Assembly (NCBI RefSeq): GCF_963853765.1
Contig: NC_088853.1
Location: 53,258,001-53,322,000 of the forward strand
Direction of reading: 5' to 3'
Length of the DNA: 64,000 bases
DNA from: Magallana gigas
Lineage: Eukaryota
Position 1 is the stretch's first letter. Each line of letters begins with the position of its first letter. Positions 4,448 through 58,610 of the stretch are shown piece after piece. Under the pieces are notes generated by a model. The model was not told the origin of the DNA and ran no database searches. It saw nothing but the letters and a program-made list of their open reading frames with translations. The position numbers and the translations under genes were made by a program.

Positions 4448-4486
4448 GGCCCTTTTCAGGGCCTCCCATATTTTACGAAAAGATGC
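4448..4486 (+). terminator. Histone-type mRNA 3' stem-loop plus histone downstream element
   Basis: AACCAAC-GGCCCT TTTC AGGGCC (4448-4463), TCCCA, then GAAAAGATGC (4477-4486); 60 nt after the RING stop codon. Confidence 0.85.
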
Positions 4487-4551
4487 TATTTATTATAATG
4501 CAAATAGAAATCAAATATGAAACACCAGTCACACTTCCCTCATACACCAAC

Positions 4552-5181: not shown

Positions 5182-5224
5182 ATAAAGGTGATGTACGATT
5201 TACATCATTTTGACTTGGAACACC

Positions 5225-5749
5225 ATGGCAAGACAAAAGAAAATTTTGAGACTCCTGAAACTTTTGCAGGGAGAAAAAGATCCAGTAAAGAGACAAGAGA
5301 CCATCGAGTTAAGTCGTAAGACTTTATTGAAATGGTTTCTCATTGGTGCAAAGAATTTGCTGAACGGGACTATTCCTATCGATAAGCAAACTCAACGTTT
5401 TATCGATAAACATTGAGAAGATGATGATAATAGATTAAAAGCGATCTTGAAACGAGGAGGAGCTGGATTTTTAGGAGGGGCGATCATTCGTCACTTGTTG
5501 AAATGGAATCTGAGTAAAGAGAGAATTGCTCAACCTAAAAAGCGTAAATCAAAGAAAATAACGCAGAAATTAAATATAAAAGATTTTGTAAAAACCCCTC
5601 CCCTAAGGAAAGACTTACCTGATTGGGTTCAGGAGCAAGTAGATTTATATCGACAAGATCAAACAGGTCAAAATCAAGATCTCATTGATCAGATAGATCA
5701 ATATCAAGAGGTAGCCCCTCCTGAGCCAAAGAAAAAGAAAAGGGGTTAG
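5225..5749 (+). pseudogene. Homolog of Maverick ORF 45511-46398, disrupted
   Basis: LKWFLIGAKNLLNGTIPIDKQTQRFIDKH and ILKRGGAGFLGG.IIRHLLKWNL are nearly identical to the copy B protein. Confidence 0.75.
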
Positions 5750-39666: not shown

Positions 39667-39740
39667 AGTAGTATAAGCCGCCTCGCTGGCCGGGTCAACT
39701 GAGTGCACTTTTCAGAGTTGACCCGGCCAGCGATGCGGCT
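39667..39740. repeat. Maverick left terminus with 25-bp-arm hairpin
   Basis: AGTAGT 39667-39672; arms 39676-39700 and 39716-39740 with one mismatch; 15-nt loop. Confidence 0.85.
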
Positions 39741-40009
39741 GAAAATCTAGCTCCCTGAGATTTTAAGCTAATAATGCGGGGTGACCAATCTAAAGTAAGC
39801 ACTTGATCGATGTTTATAGTTGGCGCATCATAGATCCCGATTTATTCAATGATTTTTCCCTCCTTGCATAATGAAATAATAAAAAAGCGAATAAACAGTG
39901 AACATTGGTTTATTGAGAAATGTATGAAAATAAAAACAAGTATGAAATAACACTGAAACAATTCAAATTTACATGAAATAACACTGAAATAGTTCAATTA
40001 CACAAAAAG

Positions 40010-40636
40010 TCAAAATACTGTCACTTTTTCTTTGCGAGAGGTAATTATGGTATTATCTCTTTTCAGATTCGGTTTTCTAGGGCTCGAGGTTTTTTTCTTG
40101 TCACCGGCTGGTGGATTATTTTCTTTTTCAGGGCATTCGGAGGCCCAATGTCCAAGGTTTTGACAAATATAGCAGGGATCTTTGTCTTTGCTTTTTTTAG
40201 GAGGATCCTGCTTTTGTGGACATTCAGGTGCCCAATGCCCTAGTTCTCCGCAGATATAACAGGGATTTGTTTTCCTGGTCGGGATTTTTGATGTGACAGG
40301 TGTCGTATTCCTGGTCTCATTTTTTATTTCACCTACTTGTTCGCTTAGAGCCTGTAGATCATTGGTAATAATTTTCCTGGTTTCACTGATTTCGTTGGCG
40401 AGATTCATCAGATTGTTGATGCTCCCATCTAGGGTGGCCATGAGCAGAGCAAGATCTTCTTTAGTAGCTGGTTTTTCTTGATCCAAGCATGCCAGTTCAA
40501 GATCCGTTGCATCCTGCGATTCCGTGATAGACTGATAATAATTCATAGATTCCCTAAGTGTGGTAGGATGATTATAATTTAAACTGGCAGAGACAGGGTC
40601 TGGACTATCAAAGCGGTCTAGTTGTTTCTGCGCCAT
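40010..40636 (-). CDS. Coiled-coil protein with two CCHC zinc knuckles (Gag nucleocapsid-like)
   Basis: CYICGELGHWAPEC and CYICQNLGHWASEC (C-x2-C-x4-H-x4-C); upstream TATAAA near 40690; AATAAA downstream near 39910. Confidence 0.8.
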   Translation of the reverse strand: MAQKQLDRFDSPDPVSASLNYNHPTTLRESMNYYQSITESQDATDLELACLDQEKPATKEDLALLMATLDGSINNLMNLANEISETRKIITNDLQALSEQVGEIKNETRNTTPVTSKIPTRKTNPCYICGELGHWAPECPQKQDPPKKSKDKDPCYICQNLGHWASECPEKENNPPAGDKKKTSSPRKPNLKRDNTIITSRKEKVTVF

Positions 40637-40685
40637 GTCTGTTTAATGTCAGAGCAAGACTGAGGGAAAAAGCAGCGATGTGCTA

Positions 40686-41030
40686 CTTTATAAATCTTAT
40701 GCAGTCTTGTGCACGAGGCTCTAAAAATAGCAATTTTTTCTTAAAATAGCATTTTTGCTATATACTAAATAGATCCGATGCAATAGATATTTTAAAAATA
40801 GCACATTTCTAAAATTGGCTATCATTTTTTTCCATATTTGCTGCACGCGGCTCTAAAAATAGCTAATTTTTTCTTCTAAAATTAACAATTTTTTATCTTA
40901 TTAATAGATCCTATGCAATATCTAATTAAATAATGAAATAGCATATATATTGTTTAAAAAACAATTGTTTAAAATAGCATATATTCATTTCTAAAAATAA
41001 ATCTGTTTTCATTTCCCTTTATGTATAAAA
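40686..41030. promoter_or_regulatory. Divergent promoter region with two TATA boxes and repeated YTA(A/T)4TAR (MEF2-consensus) motifs
   Basis: TATA boxes near 40690 (minus) and 41024 (plus); CTAAAAATAG at 40721 and 40853, TTAAAAATAG 40792, CTAAAATTAA 40876, CTAAAAATAA 40991. Confidence 0.5.
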
Positions 41031-41066
41031 AGCGTGTTCGATCGAAGCACTTGAAGAGAATTGATC

Positions 41067-44000
41067 ATGACGCTCACATCTATTAAAAAGAGTCTTCTCC
41101 GCGAGCAACGCCGTTTGAGAGAATATCGATTGAAGCAAGAACGTTTAAAACTAAGAAAAGAAAACAACCAAATACTTCAGCATTTACGGCTTTTTAGAAG
41201 AAATCTTCAACGGAAAAAGAAATTGGCCCAAACGAGAGAAAAATCCAAGTACTATCAGATCAGACTGGATCGAGGTCGTCGTTCACGTAAATTTAAGGTC
41301 CAAGAAAATGTATACAATGTGAATTTTAAACCAATACCTCAGAAAGATCATTCTCCCTTCGTTCGGAATGTGATAAGTGAGATGTTAAACGAAGTAAAAG
41401 AACAAATGCGTTGTGACCCCGACGATTATTTGCGATTAAACATACGACACCCCTCCTTAGATTCTGACATTTGGTATGAATTTACTCAATGCAAGCATCT
41501 AAATGCTGAGGGATTACTCGCTAAAATAAAAGGGGTACAACAATCTAAAAGAGATTTCACCATGACGGACGGAGCTGTTCAGTTTGATTTTGTTCATGTC
41601 CAGTATCCTCAAGGAAGTGGTGGAAATAAGAAAAAACACCTATATACAAACAAGGAGAAATTCAAAAAAGGGAAAAAGTCCATTCTGAGTATTCAGAACA
41701 CAGATTCTTTATGTTTACCTCGCGCTATTGTAGTTGCTCGTCTACACAGTAAAAAACCACAGGACCCCGGAGCTTTTAACGCCTGGCAAAAACAATGGAA
41801 GCGGATACAAGAAGCCGATTGTAGAAGTGCAGTTCAAAAGAAACAAGCTCTAGAGCTGATGGAACTTGCCGGGTGTGATTCAACTCTATCTTCTTGTGGA
41901 CCTCTAGAGCAGGGGAATTTACAGGGGGTGTTGTACCCTGAATTCCGCTTGAAGATATTTCAATTCCAAGCAAACAGTTCTACATTAAAATTAGAGCCAA
42001 TATACAAGGGATATGGAAACGGCAAGTGCTTAAACGTGTTGTTAGATCAAGGGCATTATGATACTATACTCTCTATGCCTGGGATTAGTGAACACCAGTA
42101 TTACTGTGATGATTGTGATGTAGGATACAGCCACATTGAAGAACATCGTACCACTTGTCAATATTGCTGCTCTTTTTGTCTGAGCGAGACCCCCTGCCCC
42201 CCGGACGGCAGCTGCATCGAATGTTCCGAATGTCATGGTTTTTTTAAGAGCATGACATGTTACCAGAGTCACTTAAAACCGTACAGTTCTAAGACTAGCA
42301 CCACTGTTTGCAGTATGATGGATCGATGCCAGCACTGTCAGTCCTGGATGGCTAAAAAATTGTTAGCAAATCACAAATGTGGAGGCCAGAAAAAATGCAA
42401 GATCTGTAAGAAAATTGTTGACAAGGACCACCAATGTTACGTTCAGAAGAAACCCTAAAAGAAAAAGAAAAAAGACAAATTACAGCTGTACATTTATTTC
42501 GATTTCGAATGCACACAAGAACATGGTATTCATATCCCGAATTTATGTGTGGCCCATCGTGTCTGTCAACACTGCGATCACTTACCTGTTAACGAACCCT
42601 GTACCAATTGTCAGGCTTTAGGACCCCGTCAACATGTCTTTCGAGGACCAGATACCTTAAAACATTTTGTAGAGTGGCTATTACAACCTGAATGCAAGGT
42701 TAACAACGTATCACAGTTAGTGCACGAAGGGGCTATTGTTATCGCTCACAATTTTAAAGGGTATGACGGGCAATTTATCTTGAATTATATAGTTCACAAA
42801 GCCTGTATCAAACCCTCTGTCATCATGAACGGAAGTAAATATTATCTATGGAAATTTGTGGGGTAAAATTCATAGATTCTTACAACTTTTTGCCTTTTGC
42901 ATTGTCTAAAATGCCTTCTGCTTTCGGCTTCCGGGAACTAAAAAAAGGATATTTTCCTCATTTTTTCAATACCGAACGGAACCAGAATTATGTAGGAGTC
43001 TATCCCTCACCCGCTTTCTACAATCCAGACGACATGAGTACCTCGGGACGCAAAGCTTTCTACGCTTGGTATGAGAAACAGCAGGGAAATGTGTTTAATT
43101 TTCAAGAAGAATTCCTAGCCTATTGTATTTCAGATGTGGATATTTTAAGACCTTGTTGTGCTCAGTTTAGAACAACTATTCAAACCCTTGTCCGTGTGAA
43201 TCCTTTTCAAGAAGCTATAACCTTTGCCAGCACTGCAAATCTCGCTTACCGACGGAGTTTCATGCCTGAACACACCATAGCTATCATTCCTAATCTGGGA
43301 TACCATCCCGCTCGACAGTATTCCATTAAAGCATGTCGTTGGTTGGCCTGGGAGGGTCGGGAAAAGTCTATTCGACATGCCAAAAACGGAGGGGAGGTCA
43401 GACTCGGGAATTTTACAGTAGATGGCTACGATGAGGTCAACAACACTGTGTATGAATTCCACGGTTGTTACTGGCATGGCTGCCCTATATGTTATCCAGA
43501 TAGGGTCACAGACATTCATCCTCATCACTTTGATAGGACTTATGCTACAGTCTACGAGCAGACTCTACGACGGGAAAAAGCATTACGAGATGAAGGTTAC
43601 AATGTTGTCAGTATCTGGGAGCACGAATTTGACCAACAACTGAAAAACCAGGAAGAGTTACAGACATTTTTAGAGCATTTAGACTTTCAAGATCCTTTAA
43701 ATCCCCGAGATAGTTTGTACGGCGGTCGTACCAATGCTACTCGTTTGTTTTGTACAGAGGGAGATATGCGATATGTAGATGTTTGTTCTCTGTATCCTTA
43801 CGTTTTGAAATACAAACCTTTCCCCGTGGGCCACCCCGAAATCCTGACCGAAAATTTCGGAGATGTGAGATCTTACTTCGGACTGATCAAATGTCGCGTC
43901 TTACCCCCACATGGTCTGTATCATCCCGTCTTACCCTATCGCACAGGGGGTAAATTACTGTTTCCTTTATGTCGGACCTGTGCAAAACAACGATTGGCTC

Positions 44001-44807
44001 TAGACCCCGAGTACAGATGTCAACAATCGGATTCAGATCGGTGTCTGACGGGAACATGGGTAACCACAGAACTACAGAAAGCGGTTGAAATTTGATCACA
44101 TTTACGAAATCTGGCATTTCCCTCAAAGCAGTGAGACCTTGTTCAAAGCTTATATCGACACCTTTCTTAAAATCAATCAAGAAGCTTCAGGATTTCCACC
44201 CGACTGTGAAAGTAAAGAACAGAAACAAGCATACATACATGATATTTACCAAAGGGAAGGTATCATGTTAGATTTGCTAGAAGTCGAGAAAAACCCAGTC
44301 AAACGCACTATAGCTAAACTGTTTTTAAACTGTCTGTGGGGGAAATTCGCTCAAAGAATCCAGCTACCGAAATCTCGATACCTGACAGAGGAAGCAGAAT
44401 TTCAACAATTATTACAAGATACCAGCTTAGAGGTCAAAGGGGTAGAACTCTTACAAAATTTGGAGGATCCTAACTCTGACATGATATTGATCAATTATGA
44501 GGAGAAAAAAGAATTCGTGGAAGAATGTCCCTTTGGTAACGTGGTGTTAGCCTGTTTCACCACGGCTCATGCACGATTACATTTGTATGAGACATTGGAA
44601 AAACTGGGAGAACGTGTGTTATATTTCGATACAGACAGTATCATTTATCAACATGAACAGGGGGAGTTTAATCCTACAACTGTCAACAGTTTAGGAGGAT
44701 GGACTGATGAATTAGACGGGGGTCACATTATCAAGTTTATGTCAGGGGGCCCAAAGAATTATGCTTTTGAAATAGACTGTGGAAACATTGTTTCAACTGA
44801 AACATGA
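41067..44807 (+). pseudogene. polB: Protein-primed family B DNA polymerase (pPolB) with Cys-rich N-terminal region and endonuclease-like insert; disrupted and 3'-truncated
   Basis: YFDFEC, AHNFKGYD, FIDS.NF, VDGYD...YEFHGCYWHGC, YGGRT, YVDVCSLYP, KLFLNCLWGKF, YFDTDS, GGPKNY; stop at 42456, frameshifts ~42845 and ~44090. Confidence 0.95.
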
Positions 44808-45472
44808 ATTTACCATGGTGGTAGCAGGCCCTTCTAAGTCGGGAAAAACTGAATTTGTTAAAAAGCTAGTAGAAAATACTCATTGGATCTCCCCATCCCC
44901 CGAAAAAATCATCTGGTGTTATCGAGAATGGCAACCAGCCTACGAATCTCTTACAACATCGCGTAAAGTTTATACGCAATATTCCCGAAGATGATGAGAA
45001 ATTGGTAGCAGATATCGAGACTCGACACCTCTTAATTTTTGATGATATGATGGGAGGCAGGGCTATCGAATCTATTGTGGATTGGTTTACAAGAAAAGCC
45101 CATCATCGGAATACTAGTGTTATTTACATTACTCAAAATGTATTTGATCGAGCAGCTCAACATCGCACTATTAGTTTAAACGCTCATTATTTAGTCTTGT
45201 TTAAAAATCCTAGAGACAAGTCTCAAATTGTCGTGTTGAGTCGACAATTAGATATGCCACATTTAATCTCGGCCTATCATGATGCCACTCGAATACCCCA
45301 CGGGTACCTGATTGTGGATTTAAGCATGCCACATTTAATCTCGGCCTATCATGATGCCACTCGAATACCCCACGGGTACCTGATTGTGGATTTAAGCCCT
45401 CAGACCCCCGATGAATTACGCCTGAGAAGTCACATGTTTCAGACCCTTACAGTGTATATGCCTAGAGTATAA
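44790..45472 (+). pseudogene. Packaging ATPase (FtsK/HerA, A32-like), 5'-truncated and frameshifted
   Basis: GPSKSGKT, LLIFDD, HHRNTSVIYITQN; frameshift ~44960; 72-bp in-frame duplication at 45254-45397. Confidence 0.92.
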
Positions 45473-45510
45473 ATATTAGAGTTTACATATACCCAGAATC
45501 ATTTGAAATC

Positions 45511-46398
45511 ATGACTGGAAAGAAGTTACTACACACATTACGGCGCTTACAACATGAACGAGATCCTGAGAAACGCGCGGAAATTATTGAGCTGGGGCGA
45601 AAAGCCTTAATGAAATGGTTTTTAACCGGGGCTAAAAATTTATTGAAAGGAGTCATTCCTATCAATAAACAGACACAGCGTTTCATTGATAAACATCGTG
45701 AGGATTTAAGGGTCATTGCCAATAAAAAGGTCAATGATGATAATAGAATAAGAGCTATTCTGAAACGAGGTGGGGCTGGATTTATTGGAGGAGTCATCAT
45801 TCGTCATTTATTGAAATGGAATTTGGCCAAAGCCCGAACAGCTAAACCAAGAAAAAAAACCCAAGGACGACGACTCAAGAGTGTGATAGGAAAAGTACTC
45901 AATTCCAAGGCTCCTAAACTGAGACAGTTACCCCAGTGGATGGTAGACATAGGGAAGGTTTCCTCACGCAAAAGGAAAGCTCCTAGAAAAAAGAGATCTC
46001 CCAGGAAAACCTCTCGGAAAGGACAAAAACTGATTGTAAAACTTCCTCCAAGACAGAAAAAGCCTCCTGAACAAGTTCCTTTGACCCAGCCTTCCCCCAA
46101 TACCACATTAGCCATGGCTCAAATGAAAATGAATAGAGCGATGGCAGGGCCAATAGGGAGTCAAAGAACGCCTGATATTCAATCCAGTGTGTTTCCCAGA
46201 ATTAAAGTTCTTGTTCATCACATCCCGAGATATTCCTCATTGTTTAGTAAAGTGACAGGTTTCAGTCCGTTACAAGACCCAGATAAGAAGAACAAGAAAG
46301 GAAAATATGAATGTCGCTACTGTCCCATGGAATTTAAACTGAAAAAATCCAGAGATCAACACGAAAAAACTACTCATCTTGGCTATGCCCCTCCTTAA
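45511..46398 (+). CDS. Maverick protein with conserved NLLKG-type N-terminal domain, basic linker and C-terminal C2H2 zinc finger
   Basis: AKNLLKGVIP; Lys/Arg-rich middle; CRYC-x12-H-x4-H at the C-terminus. Confidence 0.8.
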   Translation: MTGKKLLHTLRRLQHERDPEKRAEIIELGRKALMKWFLTGAKNLLKGVIPINKQTQRFIDKHREDLRVIANKKVNDDNRIRAILKRGGAGFIGGVIIRHLLKWNLAKARTAKPRKKTQGRRLKSVIGKVLNSKAPKLRQLPQWMVDIGKVSSRKRKAPRKKRSPRKTSRKGQKLIVKLPPRQKKPPEQVPLTQPSPNTTLAMAQMKMNRAMAGPIGSQRTPDIQSSVFPRIKVLVHHIPRYSSLFSKVTGFSPLQDPDKKNKKGKYECRYCPMEFKLKKSRDQHEKTTHLGYAPP

Positions 46399-46449
46399 AA
46401 AAGTATAAAAACCCTCACAAGCTAGATATAGCTATCATTGTGAACAAAG

Positions 46450-46812
46450 ATGGGTTCAAACCAGAAGAAAAAGAAAAAGAACAAAGCCTGCAGTTGTGAA
46501 TCTCGACTAAAACCTCATTTACCGATATTACAATTATTATCGATGCCTAAATATTCATCAAAATTAAAAAATGACGTTTTAAAGCATTGTTCTAATGACT
46601 GTATTTTAAAGATTTGTGAGATTGCTTACAACCTCTTAAAAGGTAATGTACCACTAAAGTCGTCTCAGAAGATAAAACTCGCGCCTCAGAAACACATCTT
46701 GAGGCGCCTCGTTCAACCACAGTCAGTACAGAAACGCAGACGAACTTTATTATTGAATCAAAAAGGAGGTGTTTTCCCAGTCATTCCCCTAATCCTCAGT
46801 TTACTGTCTTGA
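46450..46812 (+). CDS. Conserved small Maverick protein ending in QKGG plus hydrophobic tail
   Basis: ICEIAYNLLKGNVPL...LRRL...LNQKGGVFPVIPLILSLLS. Confidence 0.8.
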   Translation: MGSNQKKKKKNKACSCESRLKPHLPILQLLSMPKYSSKLKNDVLKHCSNDCILKICEIAYNLLKGNVPLKSSQKIKLAPQKHILRRLVQPQSVQKRRRTLLLNQKGGVFPVIPLILSLLS

Positions 46813-46816
46813 AATC

Positions 46817-47635
46817 ATGAGTCGTAAAATGGTGTTAGTTCCGGAAGCAATGTTACTAGAATTGAAAGGTAAATTGCCTAAATCTCCCGAATTTCAAGCT
46901 ACCATTGGCTTAGGACATCAGTTAGACCATATTCAAGGGAGAGAAGATTTAAACCCAGAAGAAAAAGTAGCCCTCTATGGTCATCAATTACATCGTTATC
47001 GGAATTATTTACAACAAGCCCGTGATCAAGGAAAGGAGAGGACATTTACAACACCATTACCTAGCGCAGAAAAAGATAAAGAGGCAGTCGAAGATGATGG
47101 GGCTGCTGCTGATGTTGCTGCTGACCCAAGTTCCTCAGAACTAGAAGAACAGGTGATGAAAAGTGTAAGCAAACAGATGCAAAAGAGAGCAGGACTTCTA
47201 TTAGATCACCTCAAAAAAACTAAAGTCTTAAAATGGAACTCCGATGGAGAAATAAGTTATCGAGGAAAACGCATACCCCAGTCTAATATCGTTGATCTGG
47301 TAACTAATACAATGAGAACTAAATCCCGTAGAGCATTTCGCTCTCCGATCGGCATTGACGAATTTGCTCAAGCCTTGAAAGAAACCAATGTGCCGACGGA
47401 TTACCTACAGAATCCAAACATTATAAAAGCCATGCAAAAGCCTGGAAAAATCAGTACCCCTAAACCCCTTCAAGATGAAAAAGACGATAATGACGACGAT
47501 ACTGGGTTTCAGGAAGCTTTTACGTTTACTACACCACAAGCTTCTCCCTTCTTTATGACGCCAAAAGTATCAAAGACAGTAAAAAAGAGAGGAAACGCAC
47601 AAATCTTAAATTGGGATAAATTGGGCAAGAAATGA
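46817..47635 (+). CDS. Conserved Maverick hypothetical protein
   Basis: MSRKMVLVP start; LKWNSDGEISYRGKRIPQSNIVDLV block typical of Maverick core ORFs; uninterrupted 272 aa. Confidence 0.75.
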   Translation: MSRKMVLVPEAMLLELKGKLPKSPEFQATIGLGHQLDHIQGREDLNPEEKVALYGHQLHRYRNYLQQARDQGKERTFTTPLPSAEKDKEAVEDDGAAADVAADPSSSELEEQVMKSVSKQMQKRAGLLLDHLKKTKVLKWNSDGEISYRGKRIPQSNIVDLVTNTMRTKSRRAFRSPIGIDEFAQALKETNVPTDYLQNPNIIKAMQKPGKISTPKPLQDEKDDNDDDTGFQEAFTFTTPQASPFFMTPKVSKTVKKRGNAQILNWDKLGKK

Positions 47636-48735
47636 AGAAAAAGAAAAAAAAATTAGAAGACATATTACGAGAGATTTATTATGATCCTAAGACTGGATAT
47701 GGAGGCGTACAAGCCCTATACCGTCAAGTACGTGCTAAGGGGTATCCTATATCACTTACGGATATTAGAAAATGGTTAAAAGAACAAGAAACATATACTC
47801 TGCATAAACCCATTCGTCGGAAATTTAAGCGACAACAAACTCGAGTGACCGGTATCGATGAGCAATGGCAATTAGACTTAGCAGATGTATCACAGTTAAA
47901 GAAAGAGAACGAGGGTAATACCTTTTTACTGTGTGCTATCGATGTACTCTCAAAATATGCTTGGGTGGTGCCATTAAAGCAAAAAACTGGGAAGGAAATG
48001 ATACGAGGATTACAACAGATCAGTAAACAAGACGGGCGACAACCCGTTCGCATTCAGTCGGACAAGGGGAGGGAATTCACAAACAAGGAGTTTTTACGCG
48101 CTTTTAAATCCATTCATTTCTTTACCACTCGCAATGCAGAAACAAAAGCAAGTATCGTGGAGCGCTTTCAACGCACACTTAAAGCTCGCATGTGGAGATA
48201 TTTCACCCGTCATAAAACTCGCCGATATCTTGACATCTTACCGGATCTTGTGTTCGCCTACAATCACTCGTATCATCGCAGTATAAAAAGAGCTCCAGCT
48301 GATGTGAATGCCTCTAATGTATTACAAGTGTGGAAAAATCTGTATAAAAAAAATTCATCTACAACTTTCTATACTCCTAAATTTCACAAAGGTGACAGAG
48401 TGCGCATCAGTAAAGCTAAACGCACTTTTGAAAAGGGATATCTGCCTAACTGGACCAGAGAGTTATTTACGATTTCTCGTCGAGTCCAGGAAGCTGTTCC
48501 ATACAGATATAAAATACAAGACTCTCATGGAGAAGAATTAGAAGGAACATTTTACGAATCAGAAATGCAAAAAGTCATAAAAAAAGACGATGTATATGAA
48601 GTGGAGGAAATATTAGACTATAAAAAGCGGCGAGTAGGAAAAAAAATCATAACTGAAATCAAAGTGCGTTGGAAAGGATATCCTCCTAGCTTTGACTCAT
48701 GGATTCCTCAAACAGATCTCCTACTTCCCAAATGA
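47632..48735 (+). CDS. int: Retroviral-like (rve) integrase with C-terminal chromodomain, intact
   Basis: WQLDLAD, IDVLSKYAW, QSDKGREF, VERFQRTLK, GYLPNWT; YEVEEIL...VRWKGYPPSFDSWIP. Confidence 0.96.
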   Translation: MKKKKKKLEDILREIYYDPKTGYGGVQALYRQVRAKGYPISLTDIRKWLKEQETYTLHKPIRRKFKRQQTRVTGIDEQWQLDLADVSQLKKENEGNTFLLCAIDVLSKYAWVVPLKQKTGKEMIRGLQQISKQDGRQPVRIQSDKGREFTNKEFLRAFKSIHFFTTRNAETKASIVERFQRTLKARMWRYFTRHKTRRYLDILPDLVFAYNHSYHRSIKRAPADVNASNVLQVWKNLYKKNSSTTFYTPKFHKGDRVRISKAKRTFEKGYLPNWTRELFTISRRVQEAVPYRYKIQDSHGEELEGTFYESEMQKVIKKDDVYEVEEILDYKKRRVGKKIITEIKVRWKGYPPSFDSWIPQTDLLLPK

Positions 48736-48947
48736 GTGATCAATGGAAAATGTTTGGTGAAAAGATTCCTAGAGCTGAAATTGTGTATTTTGCTCAACTT
48801 CTGATCTGCCTGATATTAATAATCGCTTGTATCGTCATGTTAGTCTTACATGACTCTAATCGAGAATATTGGATGATTTGTCTTAGTTCCACCGTGGGTT
48901 ACATTATGCCCAGTCCTACTCTCCAACTCAAACCAGAATCTGCATGA
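48732..48947 (+). CDS. Small two-transmembrane-helix protein
   Basis: ATG overlaps the integrase TGA (ATGA); YFAQLLICLILIIACIVMLVL and YWMICLSSTVGYIMPSP. Confidence 0.7.
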   Translation: MSDQWKMFGEKIPRAEIVYFAQLLICLILIIACIVMLVLHDSNREYWMICLSSTVGYIMPSPTLQLKPESA

Positions 48948-49070
48948 AAAAAAGTCACGTGATCATTTTTCCATCTTAAATATGAAGTGCAGCACTAGTC
49001 ACTGACTTATTATTAGCGTGAGCGCTGAGATCAAGCTGCATGGTTTTTTGTGATCTGAGACACACCTAAG

Positions 49071-49391
49071 ATGAATGAAATACAGTACCGGTGGAAAATT
49101 ATAGATCCTCAGGGAGTCCTTAAGGGAGAATGGATGTCTACTAAACAGAATTGTTTACATGATTTCATGCAGAATCCTCACGTTCCTCAGGAAGAGAGAA
49201 AAATCTACTTATACAAAAGAATTCCGATTCCCGCTGGAAAAAGATATTTCCGGATGATTGGCAAAAGTAAATATGAACAATTTCGATGGAAAGTCAAATG
49301 TCAATGGAATGTGTTTCACCCTTCAAAAAACCACGAACCTGCATGGACTCTTATCGAGGGAGACTGGACAGATGATTTCAAAAAGTTCTAA
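49071..49391 (+). CDS. Hypothetical Maverick protein
   Basis: 106-aa ORF with ATG start inside the element; no recognised motif. Confidence 0.45.
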   Translation: MNEIQYRWKIIDPQGVLKGEWMSTKQNCLHDFMQNPHVPQEERKIYLYKRIPIPAGKRYFRMIGKSKYEQFRWKVKCQWNVFHPSKNHEPAWTLIEGDWTDDFKKF

Positions 49392-49816
49392 AGACTTTCA
49401 TGAGACGATTACCAAAGGTTATGATTTTGTGGACTCCTGTGTGCCTTACATGCGGAGACCATTTCCGATTAAAGTAAAGCGGGGGAGATCCAAGAGTGTG
49501 TGACTGGCTAAAAACAAAAACAAAACAGCATAATTAGTGATTTTTTGTCATTCAAAAAATATTAAAGAATGTGTTCTTTGTTTTTTCTGTTTTGAAATAA
49601 ATATATGTGTATAAAAAAGTGTGGTTATTAATGTCAAATTTTGATATGTAGTTATGGTTCAGAATATAATTTTTTTTTAAAAATGACTAAATATTTCTAG
49701 GTTTAAAAAAAAAAAAAAAAAAAATAGATGAATATTGGAGGGTATATTATTGTCAAACTAAATAAAGGTATAAATAGAGGGGTTTAGAAAATAATTGTTT
49801 CATTGTAATTATCAAT

Positions 49817-50836
49817 ATGGCTGGAAGTGATGGGTTCTATTTGACCTTACCCAGTGATGGGTCGATGGAGGCTTTTCCACAAAATACGGTAGCTCAGTTT
49901 AAAACGTTGTTACCTCAGACAGTCGATTTAACAGATGGAGAATGGCAAATGGGTTTGACTGAAATGATGTACGGGAGTTCTGTTAAAAACATTTTATCAA
50001 ACGAATCCTATTTTGATATTTTAGTCACACAAAACTTCAAGGCATTTGTGGATGATCCCGACATTTTTAAAATCAATCGTTTTCAGATGAAAGAAATGAA
50101 TACTACACGTCTGTCTAAACTTGACCCACTAGTAGACTGGAAATATTCTTATTTGGCACGCGATGAGAGAGCTGCAAGACGAAAAGTTAAAATTGAGGAA
50201 ATTAAAAATAAAAGAGTGAAAATTTTTCGAATTCAATTTCGTTCTGGTCCTTATGTACACCCCAAGGCGTTAATCTCTGAAATCAATGAGGGTCTTAGTT
50301 TAAGCTTGAAAAGAATCTGGGAAACCATGGGTCATCCAGAACAGAAGAGTAACATGAAACTAGTGTACTACGAAAATTTTGATCGGATTGAATATCAGTA
50401 CAACGGAGAGCTGCTCCGAACTAAAAACCCCTTTAGTGTTCGCTTCCCAGTATCTCTAGCTTTAAAATTGGGGTTTGGAACAAAGGCCTTCAACACAAAT
50501 GATGAGAGCATGACAAAGTGGATCAATGTGACCTATTTAGCTCCAAACACGATCGATTTGTACGAGAATTTGAAACAGATGTACGTGTATTGCGATGTGG
50601 TAGAACCTCAGATGGTGGGGTCTAATGCTTTGAAATTACTAAGAGTCGTTCCCGTAACTCACAGTACTCACGATCACATGCAAGCTAAATGGGAGCCTGT
50701 GAGGGCCGAATATTTGAAATTGAGTAAGAAGCATTTCGATACCATCGAAATACAGATCAGAACTCCGTTAGGCATCGTGATGCCCTTTATAAGTGGAAAA
50801 AGCATCTTAAAACTTCATTTTAAAAAACTTTATTGA
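49817..50836 (+). CDS. Minor capsid protein (penton, single jelly-roll), intact
   Basis: FYLTLPSD...FPQNT..F...LP....L..GEW.MGL; YVYCDVVEPQMVG...LLRVVP; FDTIEI.I...LG..MPF..GK....LHF. Confidence 0.9.
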   Translation: MAGSDGFYLTLPSDGSMEAFPQNTVAQFKTLLPQTVDLTDGEWQMGLTEMMYGSSVKNILSNESYFDILVTQNFKAFVDDPDIFKINRFQMKEMNTTRLSKLDPLVDWKYSYLARDERAARRKVKIEEIKNKRVKIFRIQFRSGPYVHPKALISEINEGLSLSLKRIWETMGHPEQKSNMKLVYYENFDRIEYQYNGELLRTKNPFSVRFPVSLALKLGFGTKAFNTNDESMTKWINVTYLAPNTIDLYENLKQMYVYCDVVEPQMVGSNALKLLRVVPVTHSTHDHMQAKWEPVRAEYLKLSKKHFDTIEIQIRTPLGIVMPFISGKSILKLHFKKLY

Positions 50837-50993
50837 AACAGATGGATCCCTATAGCTTGACTTTTTCCATCTTGGTTGCTGTTGTTACCTGTATAATGTG
50901 TTGCATAGAATGTTTTTACACCTTCTTTCATCACTACTAAACCTCTCTATATAAGGACTCGAAACGCACCATTCTTAACATTTAAAAAAAAAC

Positions 50994-51119
50994 ATGGTGT
51001 ACCCCCAATCACCGCGGCGAAGAAGACGCCAGAGAGGACGTGGATTCTTTTTACCCATCGTTGCTTCACTCATTGCGAGTGCCGTAGGCTCTCAGCTTGG
51101 GAAAGGGAGAGGAAGATGA
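50994..51119 (+). CDS. 41-aa Arg-rich micro-ORF with amphipathic/hydrophobic helix (not in the supplied track)
   Basis: MVYPQSPRRRRRQRGRGFFLPIVASLIASAVGSQLGKGRGR; TATATAA ~45 nt upstream. Confidence 0.65.
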   Translation: MVYPQSPRRRRRQRGRGFFLPIVASLIASAVGSQLGKGRGR

Positions 51120-51203
51120 GGAGGAGGAGGAGGGGGAAAAAAGTCGAGACTTAGAAGAAAAAAGTATAAAAAAAGGAATCATTAAACAACTTCCTCAGTC
51201 GTC

Positions 51204-52064
51204 ATGGATTATCATCGCGGATTATTACGTCAACGAGGACACGGATTTTTGGGACCACTTTTAAAACTAGGACTGCCCCTAGTCGGGAGTGCCGTGACTC
51301 CCCTTCTCGGCGATTTGGCAGGGGGGTTGGTAAAAAAAATTAAACATCGTCAGAAAGGAAGTGGTTTTGTTACAAATGCTTGAAAAACGGCTGCTAAACA
51401 TGGTAATTTGGTCACCGGGAATGCCGCCATAGACAGCCTTAATAATAAAGGAACATTTATGCAAGGGCTTAGGCGGCACGGTACCCAAACACTTGGAAAC
51501 GTAGGGGTCCATGCCGTGGAACAACAACTGAGACGAAATCTACCCATCCTCCGTGCTCCTATCGTCGGATCTGTACTTAATAAGACACTGATGCCTGACG
51601 TCAGGAGAAAAGTGGGAACTGCTATCGATAATACCGTCAATAAGATCTTAGGACAAAGAGGTAAAGGTTTCGCCACTAAACTAATCAGAACGGGAGCTAA
51701 ACACTTGCCTCACTTAGTGCCGTGTTGCCTTGCAACACGGCACTAAGGCCCTCATGAAAAAGGGAGTTCAACAAGCCCCTCGCTTTTTACGTAAAGGTGC
51801 ACATGACTTAGTGAAAACGGGAACGCAACAGGCTTTACAGAGCGCTGCCCAGGCAGGCTTCGATGTCTTAAACCAAAAAGGATCTTTAAAACAAGTCGTA
51901 AAGTCTCGCGGTTTACAGGCCGTTTATAGGACCGGAAGGACTATGAAAAAGAAAAACTTACCCCCAAGCAAGGGATTGTTCTGGCCCGGGGAGGCCCCCA
52001 CAAAAGAAAAAGAACTAAGACACCCGCAGCTAAAAAATCTCGAACGGCAGATATCTTTGATTGA
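51204..52064 (+). pseudogene. Basic virion core/cement-type precursor with repeated Q-x-G-x-G-F motifs, disrupted
   Basis: QRGHGF, QKGSGF, QRGKGF; basic C-terminus ending KKSRTADIFD; one stop and two frameshifts. Confidence 0.7.
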
Positions 52065-52146
52065 ACCTATAAAAAGGCGGTCCCCAACCTTACCCTACAC
52101 ATTTTTACCCATTGTATCGTTAGTCACACATCAACCCCCCTTCTGG

Positions 52147-53554
52147 ATGATGCACCGAGAATCATGAGTGTGTGGGATGGACAGTTTAGAACTGTTTCAA
52201 GTCCCTGCCACGAACGTAGCTTTAGAAGAATCAAAATGGGTAGAATATTACCCTGTTTCCAGTACCCTGCAGTCTGATACGGCCCCTATTGAATTTGATA
52301 TTAAAGGACAGGGAGATGAATATCTCGATCTCTCACAAACCTATCTACAACTCTGTTGTAAATTCACCAAATCCGATGGTACTAATTTAACGGGAGCCTC
52401 GACTCCCGTCAATAATATCTTACATTCTCTGTTCACGGAAATCGACGTGAGTCTCAATGGAAAAGTCATTTCCCCCGGAACGGATACCTATCCGTACAAA
52501 GCCTACCTGGAGAAATTGCTCTCATACAAACCGAGAACTCTAACCAAGCAAATGAAGTCTGTGGGAGAAAGATACCGCTGAACACATGGAAGATCTTAAT
52601 TATGCTGCCGCTGAACTTACGACTAACACATTTGATGTTAGGGCAAAAGAGGATGATGAGGATGCCAAAGAAATTGAGATAGATGCAGCGGACCTGGTCT
52701 TGAGTTACCCTGCAGGATCCGGAAATGTAGGGTTAAGTAAACGTCACAAGGCCGTAGACGACAGTAAAAAAATTATTTTAATGGATCGACTCTATATTGA
52801 TTTGTTTCAACAAGATAAATTTCTACCTAACGGAGTAGACCTTCGCTTGAGATTCAATCGCGCGAAATCTGATTTCTACATGATGACGGCCGCCTTAAGC
52901 AGTGGAAAAGTAAAAATTGAGAATATGTTGTTGTTGGTGAGAAAAATCAAGCCTACTCCAACCGAGTTAAATGCCATCAATCAGCGCCTGAATGCTGAAA
53001 CAGCAAAATATCCCCTAAGACGGGTCGAAGTAAAAACATTCACTATCCCCACGGGCACTCAATCTAAAATTAGCGATCATCTCTTTCAAGGACAGATGCC
53101 GAAACGAGTGGTGTTGGGGTTTGTAGCCAATGCTGCCTTTAACGGAGATTCAACCAAAAACCCCTTTAATTTCAAAAACGCTAAAGTGAAAAAGTTAGAA
53201 ATCAGCATCAACGGCGAGAGTATGAGCACCAGACCATTTGAGCCCGATTTTGAGAACAATCTGTACCTGAGATCTTACTTGAGTCTGTATCAAGGGCTCG
53301 GAAAATTAGGGGAAGATTGGGCTCCGGACATTACCTTGGAAGAGTATAAAAAGGGATACATACTTTGGTGTGTTGATTTCACTAAAGACCAGGAAGCGCA
53401 GCTCGATAAGTTTCATCTGATCGAAACGGGGAACTTGAGAATCGAAGTTCAATTTGCAGAAAACACAGCCGAAACGCTTAACTGTTTAGTGTATGCCGAA
53501 TTTGACAATTTGTTGGAAATCAACAAACAGCGAGAAGTGAACATAGATTACTAA
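52147..53554 (+). pseudogene. Major capsid protein (double jelly-roll), disrupted
   Basis: [74 protein letters not shown]; stop at 52165 and frameshift ~52560. Confidence 0.93.
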
Positions 53555-53576
53555 AACGACAAAAAAAGACAAACTT

Positions 53577-54089
53577 ATGGATACAGGGCAGTTACGAGCC
53601 GTGTTATCACAATCCTTAGGCAGTTCTTTTGCGGGCGTCTATCCCAGAGATTTAATTCCCCATCAAAAAAGACCGTACGAGAAAGCGATCGTCGTGAATA
53701 CAGATCCTCACGATCGACCAGGAATGCATTGGGTGTGCCTTTATTTGAATACTCCCATCATTGAATACTTTGATTCATACGGATTACCCCCCTTACACCA
53801 TGAAATTAGAGATTTTATAGCTCGACATGCTCAACAATGGGACTACAATCGGAATCGTTATCAGGATTACTCTACGGACGTCTGTGGACAATATTGTGTG
53901 TATTATTTACAACAACGCCATCGAGGGAACATGAATGCTTTAGACTGGCTTTTTCCATTCCCAAAGACGTCGAGGTTATCCCCCCTTCAACGGGATCATT
54001 ATGTAGCTGAGTGGTTTAGAGAGACTTACCGTAAAGCTAAAAGAAATCAAGGACAAACTTGTCAATGTTTCTGGCAAAATATGTTTTAA
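53577..54089 (+). CDS. Adenain-like cysteine maturation protease, intact
   Basis: VNTD....GMHWV, YFDSYG, YQD....VCGQYC give the H-D-Q-C catalytic set. Confidence 0.95.
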   Translation: MDTGQLRAVLSQSLGSSFAGVYPRDLIPHQKRPYEKAIVVNTDPHDRPGMHWVCLYLNTPIIEYFDSYGLPPLHHEIRDFIARHAQQWDYNRNRYQDYSTDVCGQYCVYYLQQRHRGNMNALDWLFPFPKTSRLSPLQRDHYVAEWFRETYRKAKRNQGQTCQCFWQNMF

Positions 54090-54406
54090 TATTGTTGTTG
54101 ATGTTTCGTTGTGTTCATTCTAATTAAAAAAAAAATATATGTTTTTTCTGTAGCATTTAAGAAATATAATATATCTGATCTATGATTGGATATCTGATTT
54201 ATTATCATAAAATTGCATTGGATTTATTTTTAAAATGATATCACACTACTGTTTAAGGAGTTACTATTATTAAATCAAAAACGGTTTGATTACAAGGTAC
54301 GATGTCATAATGATATCATAATCTAATATTAGAAATTTAATATCTTATATAAATGAGCGCATCGCCAGTTTTATTTCATCCATCTTGTTCTGACATTTCA
54401 AACAAC

Positions 54407-55016
54407 ATGGAAATTATGGAAGTAGCCAACGGAGGGGAAATGTGTTCCATCTCTACGAACTTCTACGCCACCGCTTTTTGAGCCTTACATTAAAACCGAG
54501 GAAGAAGAAAAAACCATCCTAAGAAGCCTGAGACAGGAATATTTGGGTCTTGTAGAAAGTCTTATGGCAGCGGAGGATATAGTCTTCGAGAAATTGAACG
54601 CCAGTAAACCACCTAGCCGTATGGCGCTCTTTTTTTCAACACAAATAAATGCAATGGAACTAAAGGAAATGAAGACCGTGCGCTCTCTTCAGAAAGGGAT
54701 AGAAAAGCACCGCCAGTGGACCACCGATGATGTAGTGCGCAATGGAGAAGAGTACATTAAAGAAGTCTGCTTGATGAATGAGTGCGTTCAAAGAGATATA
54801 ATTGCTTCATTCGAACATAATGAGTGGAAAATCTATCTACCTCAGGAAAAAAATTCCGAGTCCTTTCATTTTCAAACCATACTACGTGAGTGCCTTAAGG
54901 ATGTAGCTACATGGTTGAGAGACTACCTGTTTATGAGCATGACAACTCTGAGGAATCTCAGCAGGAAAATTTATTTGGAGGCGCTTGTAATCCCTAAAGA
55001 AGAGCCTACCAATTAA
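54407..55016 (+). pseudogene. Hypothetical Maverick accessory ORF with 5' frameshift
   Basis: TATATAAA near 54347; ATG 54407 in one frame, long frame open 54426-55016 in another. Confidence 0.45.
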
Positions 55017-55550
55017 GGGCAAAATTCGGTACGGGGTGACATCATGTGACGTTTAATTGTGAATATTTAAACTGTTAATTGTTGTTAAAAAATTATAAGT
55101 GTATATATAATAGATTCTCACTTATGTATGCATTTGTGATTGTGTTATAGTTCAATAAATTTATCAAAAAATATGAAATCAATTTATTTTTTCTTTAAAA
55201 AAGTAATTGATATAAAAAGAATATGTGAATTGATATTTATATACCAAAAATCATATTACATGTGTAAAAAAAATGAAAACAAAATTGTGAACTGGTGTTT
55301 TAAAAATTTGAAGTAGCTAACATAGATGCTACATTTTTTCCTCCACTAGTGTATTGCTGATTCTTTGGTCACTTTGTGGAATATAATATGAGATCAATGA
55401 ACTTATTCTTCAATTGATCTCATATTGTACTCACAAAAATATCACAAATTTTTCTCTGGTATATTTTTGATCTGCTGTTGTGATATGGTCCCATTGTAGA
55501 ATATTATACATAATCATTGAACTTAATTTTTCAATTAATCACACATAATA

Positions 55551-55850
55551 TTAAACAAAGACATCACCAATTTCTTTTCTTTCATCCGTTGATATGTTGA
55601 TCCGCTGATGTGATATGGTCCCTTTCTGGATCATCATTTGGGTACTGTATTTATTCATAACAATGTCCACATGATGATCCACAAAGACATAATCAAAAAG
55701 ACGTCCCTGTGATACTGCTATGACTGGAACTGAAGAGCCGCTAAAAAACATTGAAACAAACAAACGAAGAATTTTAGTGTCTTCGTATGACATATCTACA
55801 GGTTGTCTGTTATTTTGTAAAAACAAGCAACCTATAGATACATCATACAA
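55551..55850 (-). CDS. Hypothetical ORF within a locally duplicated segment
   Basis: 99-aa ORF; 55780-55900 is imperfectly repeated at 55960-56070. Confidence 0.3.
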   Translation of the reverse strand: MYDVSIGCLFLQNNRQPVDMSYEDTKILRLFVSMFFSGSSVPVIAVSQGRLFDYVFVDHHVDIVMNKYSTQMMIQKGTISHQRINISTDERKEIGDVFV

Positions 55851-56162
55851 AGAAACATCAAGAGTCTCAGGGTTCGCTGAAAAAAAAAATAAGATAAAGT
55901 TGAAATAATTCTCTCTAAAAAAAAAAACAAAACATTAAACAATTGAAGAAATGTTGGTATCTTCCTATGACATATGTACAGACTATTTGTCATATCTTAA
56001 CAAGTAATCTATAAATATATCATACAAAATAACACCAAGAGTCTCAGGGTTCGCTGAAAAAAAAAAGTAAGATCAATGAAACAATGATTAAACAATGAAA
56101 TCGAATGAAAAACAAAAAACATTTAGACAAAACAAACAATTCGTTTCTCTGCTATAATAGAG

Positions 56163-56223
56163 GCATCTTTTCTAAAAATCTGGTGGCCCTTAAAAGGGCC
56201 GTGGGGGTTGGCTTTAAAAAGCC
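56163..56223 (-). terminator. Histone-type 3' end: imperfect stem-loop, canonical stem-loop and downstream element
   Basis: Minus strand reads GGCTT TTTA AAGCC (56210-56223), GGCCCT TTTA AGGGCC (56185-56200), ACCAG, then GAAAAGATGC (56163-56172). Confidence 0.9.
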
Positions 56224-56231
56224 CTACTGAT

Positions 56232-56624
56232 CTACTGATGTAGAATCCTCGGCAGCTGGCTAGTCGACATTCTAGCCGTTTGCCGCTGGCGGCTAGGTCG
56301 TGGCACGGGGAGGATGGCTGGCGATGGGGGTGGTGTCATATCCCTGAGAGGAACGGGGATAATTGCCGGCGGCCTGTAAGGGTGCTCCCTTCTCCTCCTC
56401 CTCCTCCTGAGGGGACTGGCCTGGGCAGGCGGTGACTGGGGGGCTGGAGGGTCTGCCGCTGCTTGGGGCTGCTGCTCTGCCGATGGCGGGGGCTGCTGCT
56501 GCTGGTGTGCCGCCCGCATTCCTCGGACGTCTAGTTGGGAGATCCGCCCGATCTCGATCTCCGCTATGGTCCGGTAGTGCACCTCCCCGTTACAGTCATT
56601 CCTTATGTGTTTAAACAAATCCAT
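56232..56624 (-). CDS. 130-aa Pro/Arg-rich protein with C-terminal histone H3 tail mimic carrying Met at the K9 position
   Basis: Intact ORF; SRQRQTARMSTSQLPR (56247-56294) aligns to H3 ARTKQTARKSTGGKAPR. Confidence 0.85.
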   Translation of the reverse strand: MDLFKHIRNDCNGEVHYRTIAEIEIGRISQLDVRGMRAAHQQQQPPPSAEQQPQAAADPPAPQSPPAQASPLRRRRRRREHPYRPPAIIPVPLRDMTPPPSPAILPVPRPSRQRQTARMSTSQLPRILHQ

Positions 56625-56717
56625 TGTGAATTAAAACATCCTTTAATCTGCAGTTACATCTTGACTCTACCCTTGTTTATTACCAGTAGATCCTACCCTG
56701 ATGAGTGGCCTACCCTG

Positions 56718-56863
56718 ATTGGACAAATCAAAATACAGAATGTTCTAGAACGCATACTAATTAGTTTAAGGTGGTAAAATATAGCTGGCTTTTCTAGAAA
56801 GTTCTAGAAATCGATGACAGTAATGTACGGATTCTTATGAAGTCATAGTTTTTTATGACGTCA
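56718..56863 (-). promoter_or_regulatory. Stress-type promoter: CCAAT box, two perfect heat-shock elements and a CRE/ATF site
   Basis: ATTGG 56718-56722; GAA-TG-TTC-TA-GAA 56738-56750; TTC-TA-GAA-AG-TTC-TA-GAA 56792-56809; TGACGTCA 56856-56863. Confidence 0.75.
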
Positions 56864-57090
56864 CTTTGAACTCCCTGATGTTTAATAACTCAGTTTTTTA
56901 ACTACACACTAAAATACATGATATTATACCTGACTTTAATAAAAAAAAAAATCGGGAAAAGCAGAACATTTTGTTAATAGCAAATACATTTTTAATTTGA
57001 ATTAGAATTTGCACACTATAAACAACATAATATTTTGTTATGTTTAATAATTTTAATCGATGAATACAGTGAAATACACACATACGAAAT

Positions 57091-57339
57091 TCAAGTTCTC
57101 TGTTGTTTGATATAGGTCCATAACAATTTTCTCAATTTACACATAGTTCTTACACGGTCTACGGCCACGAACATCCACGGACTCCTCCGGTCTTCGGGAG
57201 GTAAAACATATATTTGATCCTGTGCAGTATCAAAAGTCACTCGTTTTCCTTTAGATTTTTGAGACTTAATAACTTCATCCAACCGAATTGAATGGTTGTA
57301 ATACGAATCGCTTCTATCTGTTGATGAAGTCGATGACAT
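57091..57339 (-). CDS. ICP34.5/DP71L/GADD34-like PP1-recruiting protein
   Basis: KRVTF (RVxF) followed by EDRRSPWMFVAVDRVR, matching the R.GPW...A.DR.RF motif of this family; first ATG at 57339. Confidence 0.75.
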   Translation of the reverse strand: MSSTSSTDRSDSYYNHSIRLDEVIKSQKSKGKRVTFDTAQDQIYVLPPEDRRSPWMFVAVDRVRTMCKLRKLLWTYIKQQRT

Positions 57340-57534
57340 TTTATCCACTTTTTACTTCTGTCGGGGGATAAGATAAACTCCAGGATATCTTGATGATATT
57401 CTGTAGAAGAAACGCCAGTCAGTTTAGGTAAAACTGCTTTTTAACTGCATCGGCGATGTAAGCAATTATCTAAGCAAAGTGAGCAATTAACTTGGGTTTT
57501 TTTTTTTTTTGCAAAGTAACTACTCTATTAACAA

Positions 57535-57647: not shown

Positions 57648-58610
57648 AAAGTTTGTGGTTTCAAATATGTTCAAATGAAGGGCCATGCCCTTTTTCAGGG
57701 GAACATAATTAAGAATAATTAAGAATATGTTGGCATTTTTAAAAAATCTTCTCAGAAGTCACTCGGCCAGAAAAACTAAAACTTGTGTGGAAGCATCCTC
57801 AGATAGTGTACATTGAAGTTTGTTCAAATCATGGTCCCCGGGGGTATGGTTGGACTACAATTGGGGGTCGAATTCTTGCATAGGAATATATAGAGAAACA
57901 TTATAAAAATCTTCTTCTCAAAAATCAATTGGCCTGAAAAGCTGTGACATAGGAATATATCATATCAGGATATTGAATCATCCTCAGGAAGTGTAGATTC
58001 AAGTTTGTTGAAATCAGGATCCACAGGGGTACATGTAGGATGGGGCCACAATGAGGTGGGGGGAGTCAAATTATATAGAGAAAATTCTTTTTAAAATCTT
58101 CTTCTCAAAAACCAATAAGTCAGAAATTCTGTTACTTGTGTAAAAGCATACTGAGGTAGTGTAGATGCAAGTTTGACCAAATCATGATCCCCAGGAGTAG
58201 GAATGGGCCACAATTTAGGGGTTATCAAATTTTTAAATAGTAATATATAGGGAAAATTTAAATCTGTAGGAAATCGATCTTCAACTCAAAAACCAATGGG
58301 CCAGAAAAGCTGTAACTTGTGTAGTTAGGTAGGTTACATTCAAGTTTGTTCAAATCATGATTTGGGGGGGGGGGGGTTGAATTATTCCATAGGAATTCTT
58401 TCAAAGTCTTCTTCTAAAAAACTGAAACAAAAGGAATTTCGTGTTTATAATGAATAGAATATGAGTGTGCAGAACATTTTAAAGATCTTTTTAAAGAATA
58501 TATACTTTAATTACTATATATTAAAAATATTTTTTTTCTGGTACCATGAAGGTGATTTGTTCAGAGTGGTGGTTGCTCAGCTGAGCGATGTGGCCCCTGG
58601 GCCTCTGGCT
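57535..58610 (+). repeat. Helentron/HINE-type repeat with ~165-185 bp internal monomers
   Basis: 5' CTCACCTCAGCTGAAGGCTGAAGTGAG; recurring AATCTTCT...GCCAGAAAA...AAGTTTG..CAAATCATG; 3' GCGATGTGGCCCCTGGGCCTC hairpin. Confidence 0.7.

Follow-up and report, generated by a model that had tools for sequence, protein, structure and literature searches.

A Polinton/Maverick-borne gene in an oyster genome encodes a conserved C-terminal motif that resembles the histone H3 tail with methionine in place of lysine 9

The ORF, its family and its C-terminal motif

The region analysed is a 64,000-nucleotide stretch of the Magallana gigas genome (GCF_963853765.1, NC_088853.1, positions 53,258,001 to 53,322,000; hereafter the window). 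It contains, on the minus strand at 56232-56624, an ORF of 130 aa, termed here the H3-motif gene, that lies within a decayed Polinton/Maverick element. The C-terminus of the ORF, encoded by 56247-56294 on the minus strand, reads SRQRQTARMSTSQLPR. The initial annotation likened this peptide to residues 1-11 of histone H3, and the comparison is correct; the two sequences match at 7 of 11 positions (R2, Q5, T6, A7, R8, S10 and T11), with Arg at the K4 position and Met at the K9 position. The heptapeptide QTARMST (56262-56282, with the Met codon at 56268-56270) is identical to residues 5-11 of published H3K9M peptides, including an H3K9M 1-21 peptide (PMC9677696, which also prints the H3 1-25 and 21-44 peptides) and the K9M peptide co-crystallized with G9a (PMC5030085). 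A full-text literature search for this string returned only three papers, all on H3K9M. The Pro-Arg pair that follows, which had been described as similarly placed to that of H3, is offset by one residue. A proposed second echo of the histone, RREHPYRP, is not supported. It shares only four of eight residues (His, Tyr, Arg and Pro) with H3 36-43 as printed in PMC9677696, is N-terminal to the first motif and thus in the reverse order to H3, and only H-x-Y is retained in relatives.

The sequence match alone is weak evidence. Scattered matches of 7/11 or better appear in 11 of 300 shuffled windows, while contiguous QTARxST is expected 0.0016 times per window and, with Met, 3.3e-5 times per window. 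In six-frame translation the exact string is therefore expected about 0.3-0.5 times in a genome of this size, or by chance about once in two or three genomes. Allowing any of seven K-to-M heptamers to match at 6 of 7 positions gives an expectation of 0.05 per window. It is the conservation and setting of the motif that make it more than chance.

Protein searches identified a small family comprising 26 clusters, which expanded to 57 sequences. All derive from unannotated assemblies of sequencing runs and one ENA assembly, and thus provide little phylogenetic depth; none has a name or a Pfam domain, and searches of IMG/VR and JGI metagenomes found no more distant relatives. Pairwise dN/dS in this frame is 0.3-0.5, indicating purifying selection, and falls to 0.13-0.3 in the N-terminal module and, for most pairs, in the C-terminal 25 codons. 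The conserved C-terminal motif, R-x-T-A-R-M-S-T-S-x-L-P-R-I-L (56241-56285, minus strand), is retained in 45 members, while the remaining 12 lack it through truncation or frame change. Many copies are frameshifted or truncated, so the family includes decayed copies. Met is present in 45 of the 45 motif-bearing members, and its ATG is invariant in 8 distinct nucleotide versions. T, A, S, T, L and I are likewise invariant although their codons vary synonymously, and the Ser after the second T is encoded by both AGC and TCN. Other positions are less constrained. The Gln is Pro in one lineage and Lys in the family member P0007, while the residue preceding Met is Arg in 31 members, Gly in 13 (one lineage, whose N-terminus is degraded) and Cys in 1. 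Whether homologues keep the motif had been set beforehand as a test of the H3K9M reading, and the outcome, conservation of T-A-(R)-M-S-T, is largely in its favour.

Counted from the natural start, intact relatives are 147 aa and the protein contains 21 Arg, including a run of seven, no Lys, and has a pI of 11.6. The ORF is 62% G+C in a 31% G+C setting. An AF2 model built with the family alignment predicts three strands and a helix in the first 56 residues (pLDDT 64-82), no secondary structure thereafter and disorder after residue 60, with a pLDDT of 46-69 in the tail. The predicted linker is Pro/Gln/Arg-rich and evolves rapidly, while only the two ends of the protein are constrained. The protein is not a histone relative. 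Searches against Pfam and PHROGs gave no family, PDB sequence searches with the whole ORF or its last 27 residues returned neither H3 nor any chromatin protein at E values up to 10, and Foldseek comparison of the AF2 model with the PDB gave nothing below E 0.3. As the N-terminal module is predicted to consist of three strands and a helix, a chromodomain was considered, but hhalign against the element's own integrase family gave a probability of only 0.2% and the idea was rejected.

The copy in the window is damaged. A single deletion of about 0.27 kb removed the natural start and roughly the first 25 codons, and an upstream in-frame ATG gives rise to the 130-aa ORF, which lacks the first two predicted strands but keeps the tail. 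The same deleted form occurs in other samples. The possibility that the missing segment is an intron was rejected, because it has no GT-AG borders and the natural start codon lies inside it. As this copy also resides in a decayed element, it may be inert.

Signals flanking the gene

A histone 3′ UTR stem-loop (56159-56205, minus strand; stem-loop proper 56185-56200) is located about 30 nt after the stop codon. It scores 34.8 bits against Rfam RF00032, for which the gathering score is 34, and is found at 33.8-40.8 bits in six of nine related loci. The 16-nt stem-loop is identical in several diverged copies, although flanks in these loci are only 72-75% identical to the window, and in one copy (the related locus L010) a single stem position is changed but can still form a G-U pair. 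A purine-rich block (56163-56172) follows the stem-loop and is shared with the second stem-loop in the window; its assignment as a U7-binding element is an inference. The gene associated with this second stem-loop, a P-rich RING ORF at 3482-4387, displays no significant BLASTP similarity to the H3-motif gene, and a shared origin was therefore rejected.

Upstream of the ORF, a promoter-like region (56671-56863, minus strand) contains a CRE palindrome (56856-56863), two perfect heat-shock-element arrays (56792-56809 and 56738-56750), a CCAAT box (56715-56722) and a TATA-like box (56671-56681). All three matches in the window to a three-unit heat-shock pattern fall within 72 bp upstream of this ORF, and the arrangement, including the heat-shock elements, CCAAT box and CRE, is conserved in diverged copies (related loci L008, L010-L013 and L001). 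That these signals are functional is predicted from established knowledge of such promoters and of histone mRNA processing.

The surrounding Polinton/Maverick element

The H3-motif gene is carried by a Polinton/Maverick-like element of roughly 18 kb (39681-57461). The left terminus is sharp and consists of a terminal inverted-repeat block (39681-39932) that begins with a hairpin with 16-nt arms. The right terminal repeat is missing, as homology to a fuller copy, the 15.4-kb contig L020, stops at 57461. L020 is 98% identical to the window from 46559 to 57461 and contains the intact H3-motif gene followed, on the other strand, by a 220-aa ORF, the protease candidate, a 474-aa ORF and onward to the integrase. 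Beyond the gene and its upstream neighbour, L020 carries in inverted orientation the AT-rich subterminal tandem repeats that precede the polymerase in the window (40709-40933; these are also inverted near the other end in contig L002) and a 256-bp block that is 96.5% identical to window 39680-39932. The 252-bp terminal block of the window is joined to three different outside sequences in the window, in L020 and in L002/L005, showing that it is a terminal inverted repeat and that the copies lie at different sites. An initial model of the element, based on weak inverted matches near 40.6 kb and 54.4 kb, placed the gene outside its bounds, but was rejected once L020, L002 and L005 revealed the true terminus at 39681 and the same terminal block beyond the gene.

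Two further observations support linkage of the gene to the element. Contigs L002-L006 are an internal-deletion derivative of about 16 kb, at another locus, that keep the left terminal region, the H3-motif gene, its upstream neighbour and the right subterminal repeats. The view that these contigs represent an empty insertion site was rejected, as their stem-loop is cut short whereas most lineages have the whole stem-loop and the 1-kb downstream region. In addition, a paralogue lineage with only 43% protein identity sits in the same position beside the 220-aa ORF, where nucleotide identity is 90%, against 72% in the H3-motif ORF.

The element encodes, within the left terminal region, an ORF of 208 aa with two CCHC zinc knuckles (40010-40636, minus strand). 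A protein-primed family B DNA polymerase (41061-44807, plus strand; Pfam DNA_pol_B_2, E 3.8e-35 and 1.3e-9 on two pieces) is spread over three ORFs and thus contains at least two breaks. The integrase (47632-48735, plus strand) is intact, with an rve core (E 8.5e-10) and a C-terminal chromodomain (Chromo, E 1.2e-8). It has 2598 relatives, and the nearest named ones are oyster proteins from Saccostrea (79-80%), Ostrea edulis (77%) and Crassostrea virginica (69%). The large ORF at 52147-53554 (plus strand; 474 aa in L020) is a capsid candidate by size and position only, and is broken in the window by one frameshift and one stop; candidate ORFs for the capsid and packaging functions gave no Pfam or PDB hits. 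The intact 170-aa ORF at 53577-54089 (plus strand) is a weak candidate for an adenain-like cysteine protease, with a Peptidase_C5 match at E 0.03 that did not reach the cut-off and one weak PDB hit to a viral cysteine protease at E 0.18. The ORF at 54353-55016 (plus strand; 220 aa in L020), to which no function is assigned, is broken by one frameshift and is linked to the H3-motif gene in two paralogue lineages. Relative to L020, a 284-aa ORF contains several stops, a 66-aa ORF one stop and a 148-aa ORF one frameshift, although L020 is itself broken in an ORF that is whole in the window. Immediately upstream of the H3-motif gene, on the same strand, an 85-aa ORF (57091-57348) contains a PPP1R15-type PP1-binding motif, supported by weak hits only.

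Possible function and relation to known systems

These data support the view that the ORF is an accessory (cargo) gene of an oyster-type Polinton/Maverick, encoding a small, very basic, almost lysine-free protein. The most likely mechanism, although tentative (probability about 0.4) and inferred by analogy, is that its tail acts as a K-to-M pseudo-substrate. In this view Met would sit in the aromatic lysine channel of the SET domain of an H3K9 methyltransferase, while the flanking T-A-R and S-T would make the substrate contacts, trapping or occupying the enzyme and weakening H3K9me-based silencing of the element. Transcription is predicted to be stress-inducible, and the mRNA to end like a replication-dependent histone mRNA, which would couple it to S phase, when H3K9 methylation is re-established. 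The analysis establishes the gene, the selection acting on it, the conservation of its motif, the flanking signals and its place inside the element, whereas expression, heat inducibility, 3′-end cleavage and S-phase timing, nuclear action, and binding or inhibition of any methyltransferase are inferred. The proposal of the initial annotation, that this is a natural K9M-type inhibitor encoded by a mobile element, is thus partly supported; carriage by a mobile element holds and the motif is largely conserved, but inhibition remains a hypothesis.

The pseudo-substrate reading is consistent with reported enzyme specificities. In the 1.7 Å G9a co-crystal structure, residues 3-12 of the K9M peptide are ordered and Met fills the lysine pocket (PMC5030085). 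SUV39H2 reads R8, S10, T11 and G12, with T6, A7, G13 and K14 contributing, while SUV39H1 and G9a depend on R8 (PMC8303541). The invariant positions of the family (T, A, M, S, T and mostly R) match that list, but G12-K14 are not matched, and the Arg before Met, critical for G9a and SUV39H, is not invariant. The absence of Lys fits a pseudo-substrate, and the neighbouring genes, an ORF with a PP1-binding motif and an integrase with a chromodomain, fit a theme of host manipulation and chromatin.

It is possible, and only somewhat less likely, that the likeness to H3 is coincidental, and that the C-terminus is a conserved short linear motif for another partner, such as a kinase or phospho-reader acting on R-M-S-T-S, a docking site using L-P-R-I-L, or a nuclear-import or element-specific partner. 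This view is consistent with the chance expectations given above, the extension of conservation into L-P-R-I-L, which is not H3-like, the variability of Gln and Arg, and the lack of any sequence or structural link to chromatin proteins in the searches performed. The chance figure, however, is for all six frames of a whole genome, and only a small fraction of those positions lie in a selected coding frame, in a disordered tail, or in a gene with a histone-type 3′ end on a mobile element; furthermore, the invariant positions coincide with those read by H3K9 methyltransferases. The motif could also be a true H3-tail mimic directed at other tail-binding factors, such as Ser10/Thr11-directed kinases or phosphatases, phospho-readers, H3K9 demethylases or reader modules, diverting these from chromatin or recruiting them to the element. 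The identity to H3 5-11 apart from Met, the invariant S-T-S, the adjacent PP1-binding motif and documented viral histone mimicry through readers are in harmony with this proposal, but it is unlikely, as Met at the Lys position is the specific hallmark of SET-domain trapping and has no obvious use for readers of methyl-lysine. Less likely still, the protein may be a DNA-condensing or virion core protein, Arg-rich like protamines and the core proteins of related viruses, made with histone-type timing to coat replicated element DNA. Its basic composition, the histone-type 3′ end and the location of the gene next to the candidate capsid and protease module accord with such a role. By contrast, the gene has its own predicted heat-shock-type promoter and is transcribed opposite to the structural genes, only the two ends of the protein are constrained, and this reading does not explain the invariant T-A-R-M-S-T.

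K-to-M histone mutations and EZHIP show that one Met in a histone-like peptide can disable a whole silencing pathway, but the cases described so far concern cancer or one mammalian germline gene, and K27 rather than K9. As H3K9 methylation is the main mark that silences transposons, a transposon carrying its own K9M-type decoy would be a new kind of counter-silencing weapon, and its product a natural, evolution-tuned inhibitor peptide for H3K9 methyltransferases. In its fullest form, in which a stress-inducible gene with a histone-type mRNA end, beside a PP1-recruiting gene aimed at the stress response, encodes a lysine-free, disordered poison of host H3K9 methyltransferases, this would be the first natural K9M-type inhibitor and the first mobile-element-encoded 'oncohistone mimic' used against heterochromatin silencing; this composite view is doubtful on present evidence, although not excluded. 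A literature search for a natural K9M-like mimic returned no papers. Even if the mimicry proposal fails, a non-histone gene on a Maverick that combines heat-shock elements with a histone stem-loop, and its pairing with a PPP1R15-like ORF, are unusual in their own right.

The element resembles described Polinton/Maverick elements with cargo genes in its protein-primed polymerase B, rve integrase, terminal inverted repeats and accessory genes near an end, with only a weak candidate for the protease, while the literature search found no report linking Polinton/Maverick cargo with histone mimicry. In viral histone mimicry, as here, short linear copies of a histone tail are encoded by virus-like entities in disordered regions, as in a virome-wide survey (PMC11738798). 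The known mimics retrieved, however, keep the modifiable lysine and act as decoy substrates or reader baits, whereas here it is replaced with Met; at least one claimed case is contested (PMC10833455), a warning against motif-only claims. The H3K9-like automethylation motifs of SETDB1 and G9a are also non-histone sequences recognized by H3K9 methyltransferases (bioRxiv 10.1101/2025.01.21.634156 and 10.1101/2025.10.22.683908), but these are Lys-containing substrates within the enzymes themselves, while the site described here cannot be methylated. Compared with the H3K9M oncohistone and H3K9M peptides that trap G9a and Clr4, QTARMST lies within the part seen bound in the G9a active site, but the motif is at the C-terminus of a soluble protein without a histone fold rather than in a nucleosomal tail. 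In yeast, K9M trapping is reported to be reinforced by H3K14 ubiquitylation (PMC8167812), and the oyster protein has no lysine at the matching position.

The closest working model is EZHIP (CXorf67), the natural H3K27M-like inhibitor of PRC2. EZHIP is disordered and poorly conserved apart from a 12-residue C-terminal K27M-like peptide, in which Met enters the EZH2 active site and Arg at −1 is essential (PMC6513997). The oyster protein is likewise predicted to be mostly disordered, with a fast-evolving linker and a short C-terminal peptide that copies the H3 sequence around a target lysine, with Met in its place. The two proteins display no sequence relationship, and inhibition, which has been demonstrated for EZHIP, is inferred only by analogy for the oyster protein. 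The target lysine would be K9 rather than K27, the carrier is a mobile element of a mollusc rather than a mammalian germline gene, and the oyster protein has an additional N-terminal module, with a histone-type mRNA end and heat-shock elements at its gene.

The termini of the element and its repeats

The element terminus begins with a near-perfect hairpin (39684-39732), in which 16-nt arms surround a 17-nt loop. The two terminal regions of the element share their outer block and subterminal repeats but enclose different ORFs. While the left end in the window contains a 208-aa protein with two CCHC knuckles (40010-40636, minus strand), the right end in L020, a contig carrying a fuller copy of the element, contains an unrelated 238-aa ORF (796-1512 of L020, minus strand). 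Diverged tandem repeats of about 180-230 bp (57736-58361) lie just beyond the point where homology to the fuller element copy stops. Within the element, a perfect 72-bp tandem duplication (45254-45397) is located inside a 156-aa ORF (45002-45472), where it repeats 24 residues in frame. This ORF and the next one have homologues, at 4834-5749, in a second Polinton fragment.

A second histone stem-loop and other mobile elements

The second Polinton fragment (4579-5541) is 66-77% identical to 44791-45854. Directly upstream of this fragment, a feature spanning 3482-4487 on the plus strand comprises a Pro-rich ORF, which ends in a RING finger and has one in-frame stop, followed by a second histone stem-loop (4443-4487) that scored 32.7 bits, just under the gathering score. 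Both stem-loops in the window share the downstream block GAAAAGATGC. The Pro-rich ORF shows no significant sequence similarity to the putative mimic gene by BLASTP. A strong palindromic hairpin at 7671-7743 scored on both strands with several unrelated Rfam hairpin families, in all cases below their gathering scores. Other transposons are also present, namely an intact Harbinger-type transposase (13066-13953, minus strand; DDE_Tnp_4, E 1e-38), an intact Tc1/mariner transposase (24570-25598, minus strand; DDE_3 plus HTH) and a broken Tc1-like copy (1998-3049, plus strand). No ordinary host gene was recognised anywhere in the window.

The surroundings of the putative mimic gene

The mimic ORF (56232-56624) is 62% G+C, in contrast to the 30-31% of the 500 bp on either side. 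In cross-lineage comparisons the ORF is much more diverged (72-76% nucleotide identity) than its neighbours (90%), suggesting fast evolution of the linker. The AT-rich spacer downstream of the stem-loop contains a tandem duplication of about 170 bp (55743-56085; 78% identity), with hairpins that gave weak microRNA-family hits (55779-55853). This spacer is conserved at 75-90% in diverged copies, more than the mimic ORF itself.

Just upstream of the mimic gene, an 85-aa ORF (57091-57348, minus strand) carries an R-V-T-F ... W ... D-R motif. In L020 this ORF overlaps a 163-aa ORF in another frame. The only PDB hits of the 85-aa ORF are PP1-binding fragments of PPP1R15B, although these are weak (E 0.07-0.27), and the Pfam family PP1c_bdg scored E 0.012, which is below the cut-off. 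It is possible that the ORF encodes an element-borne recruiter of PP1, of the eIF2-alpha dephosphorylation type.
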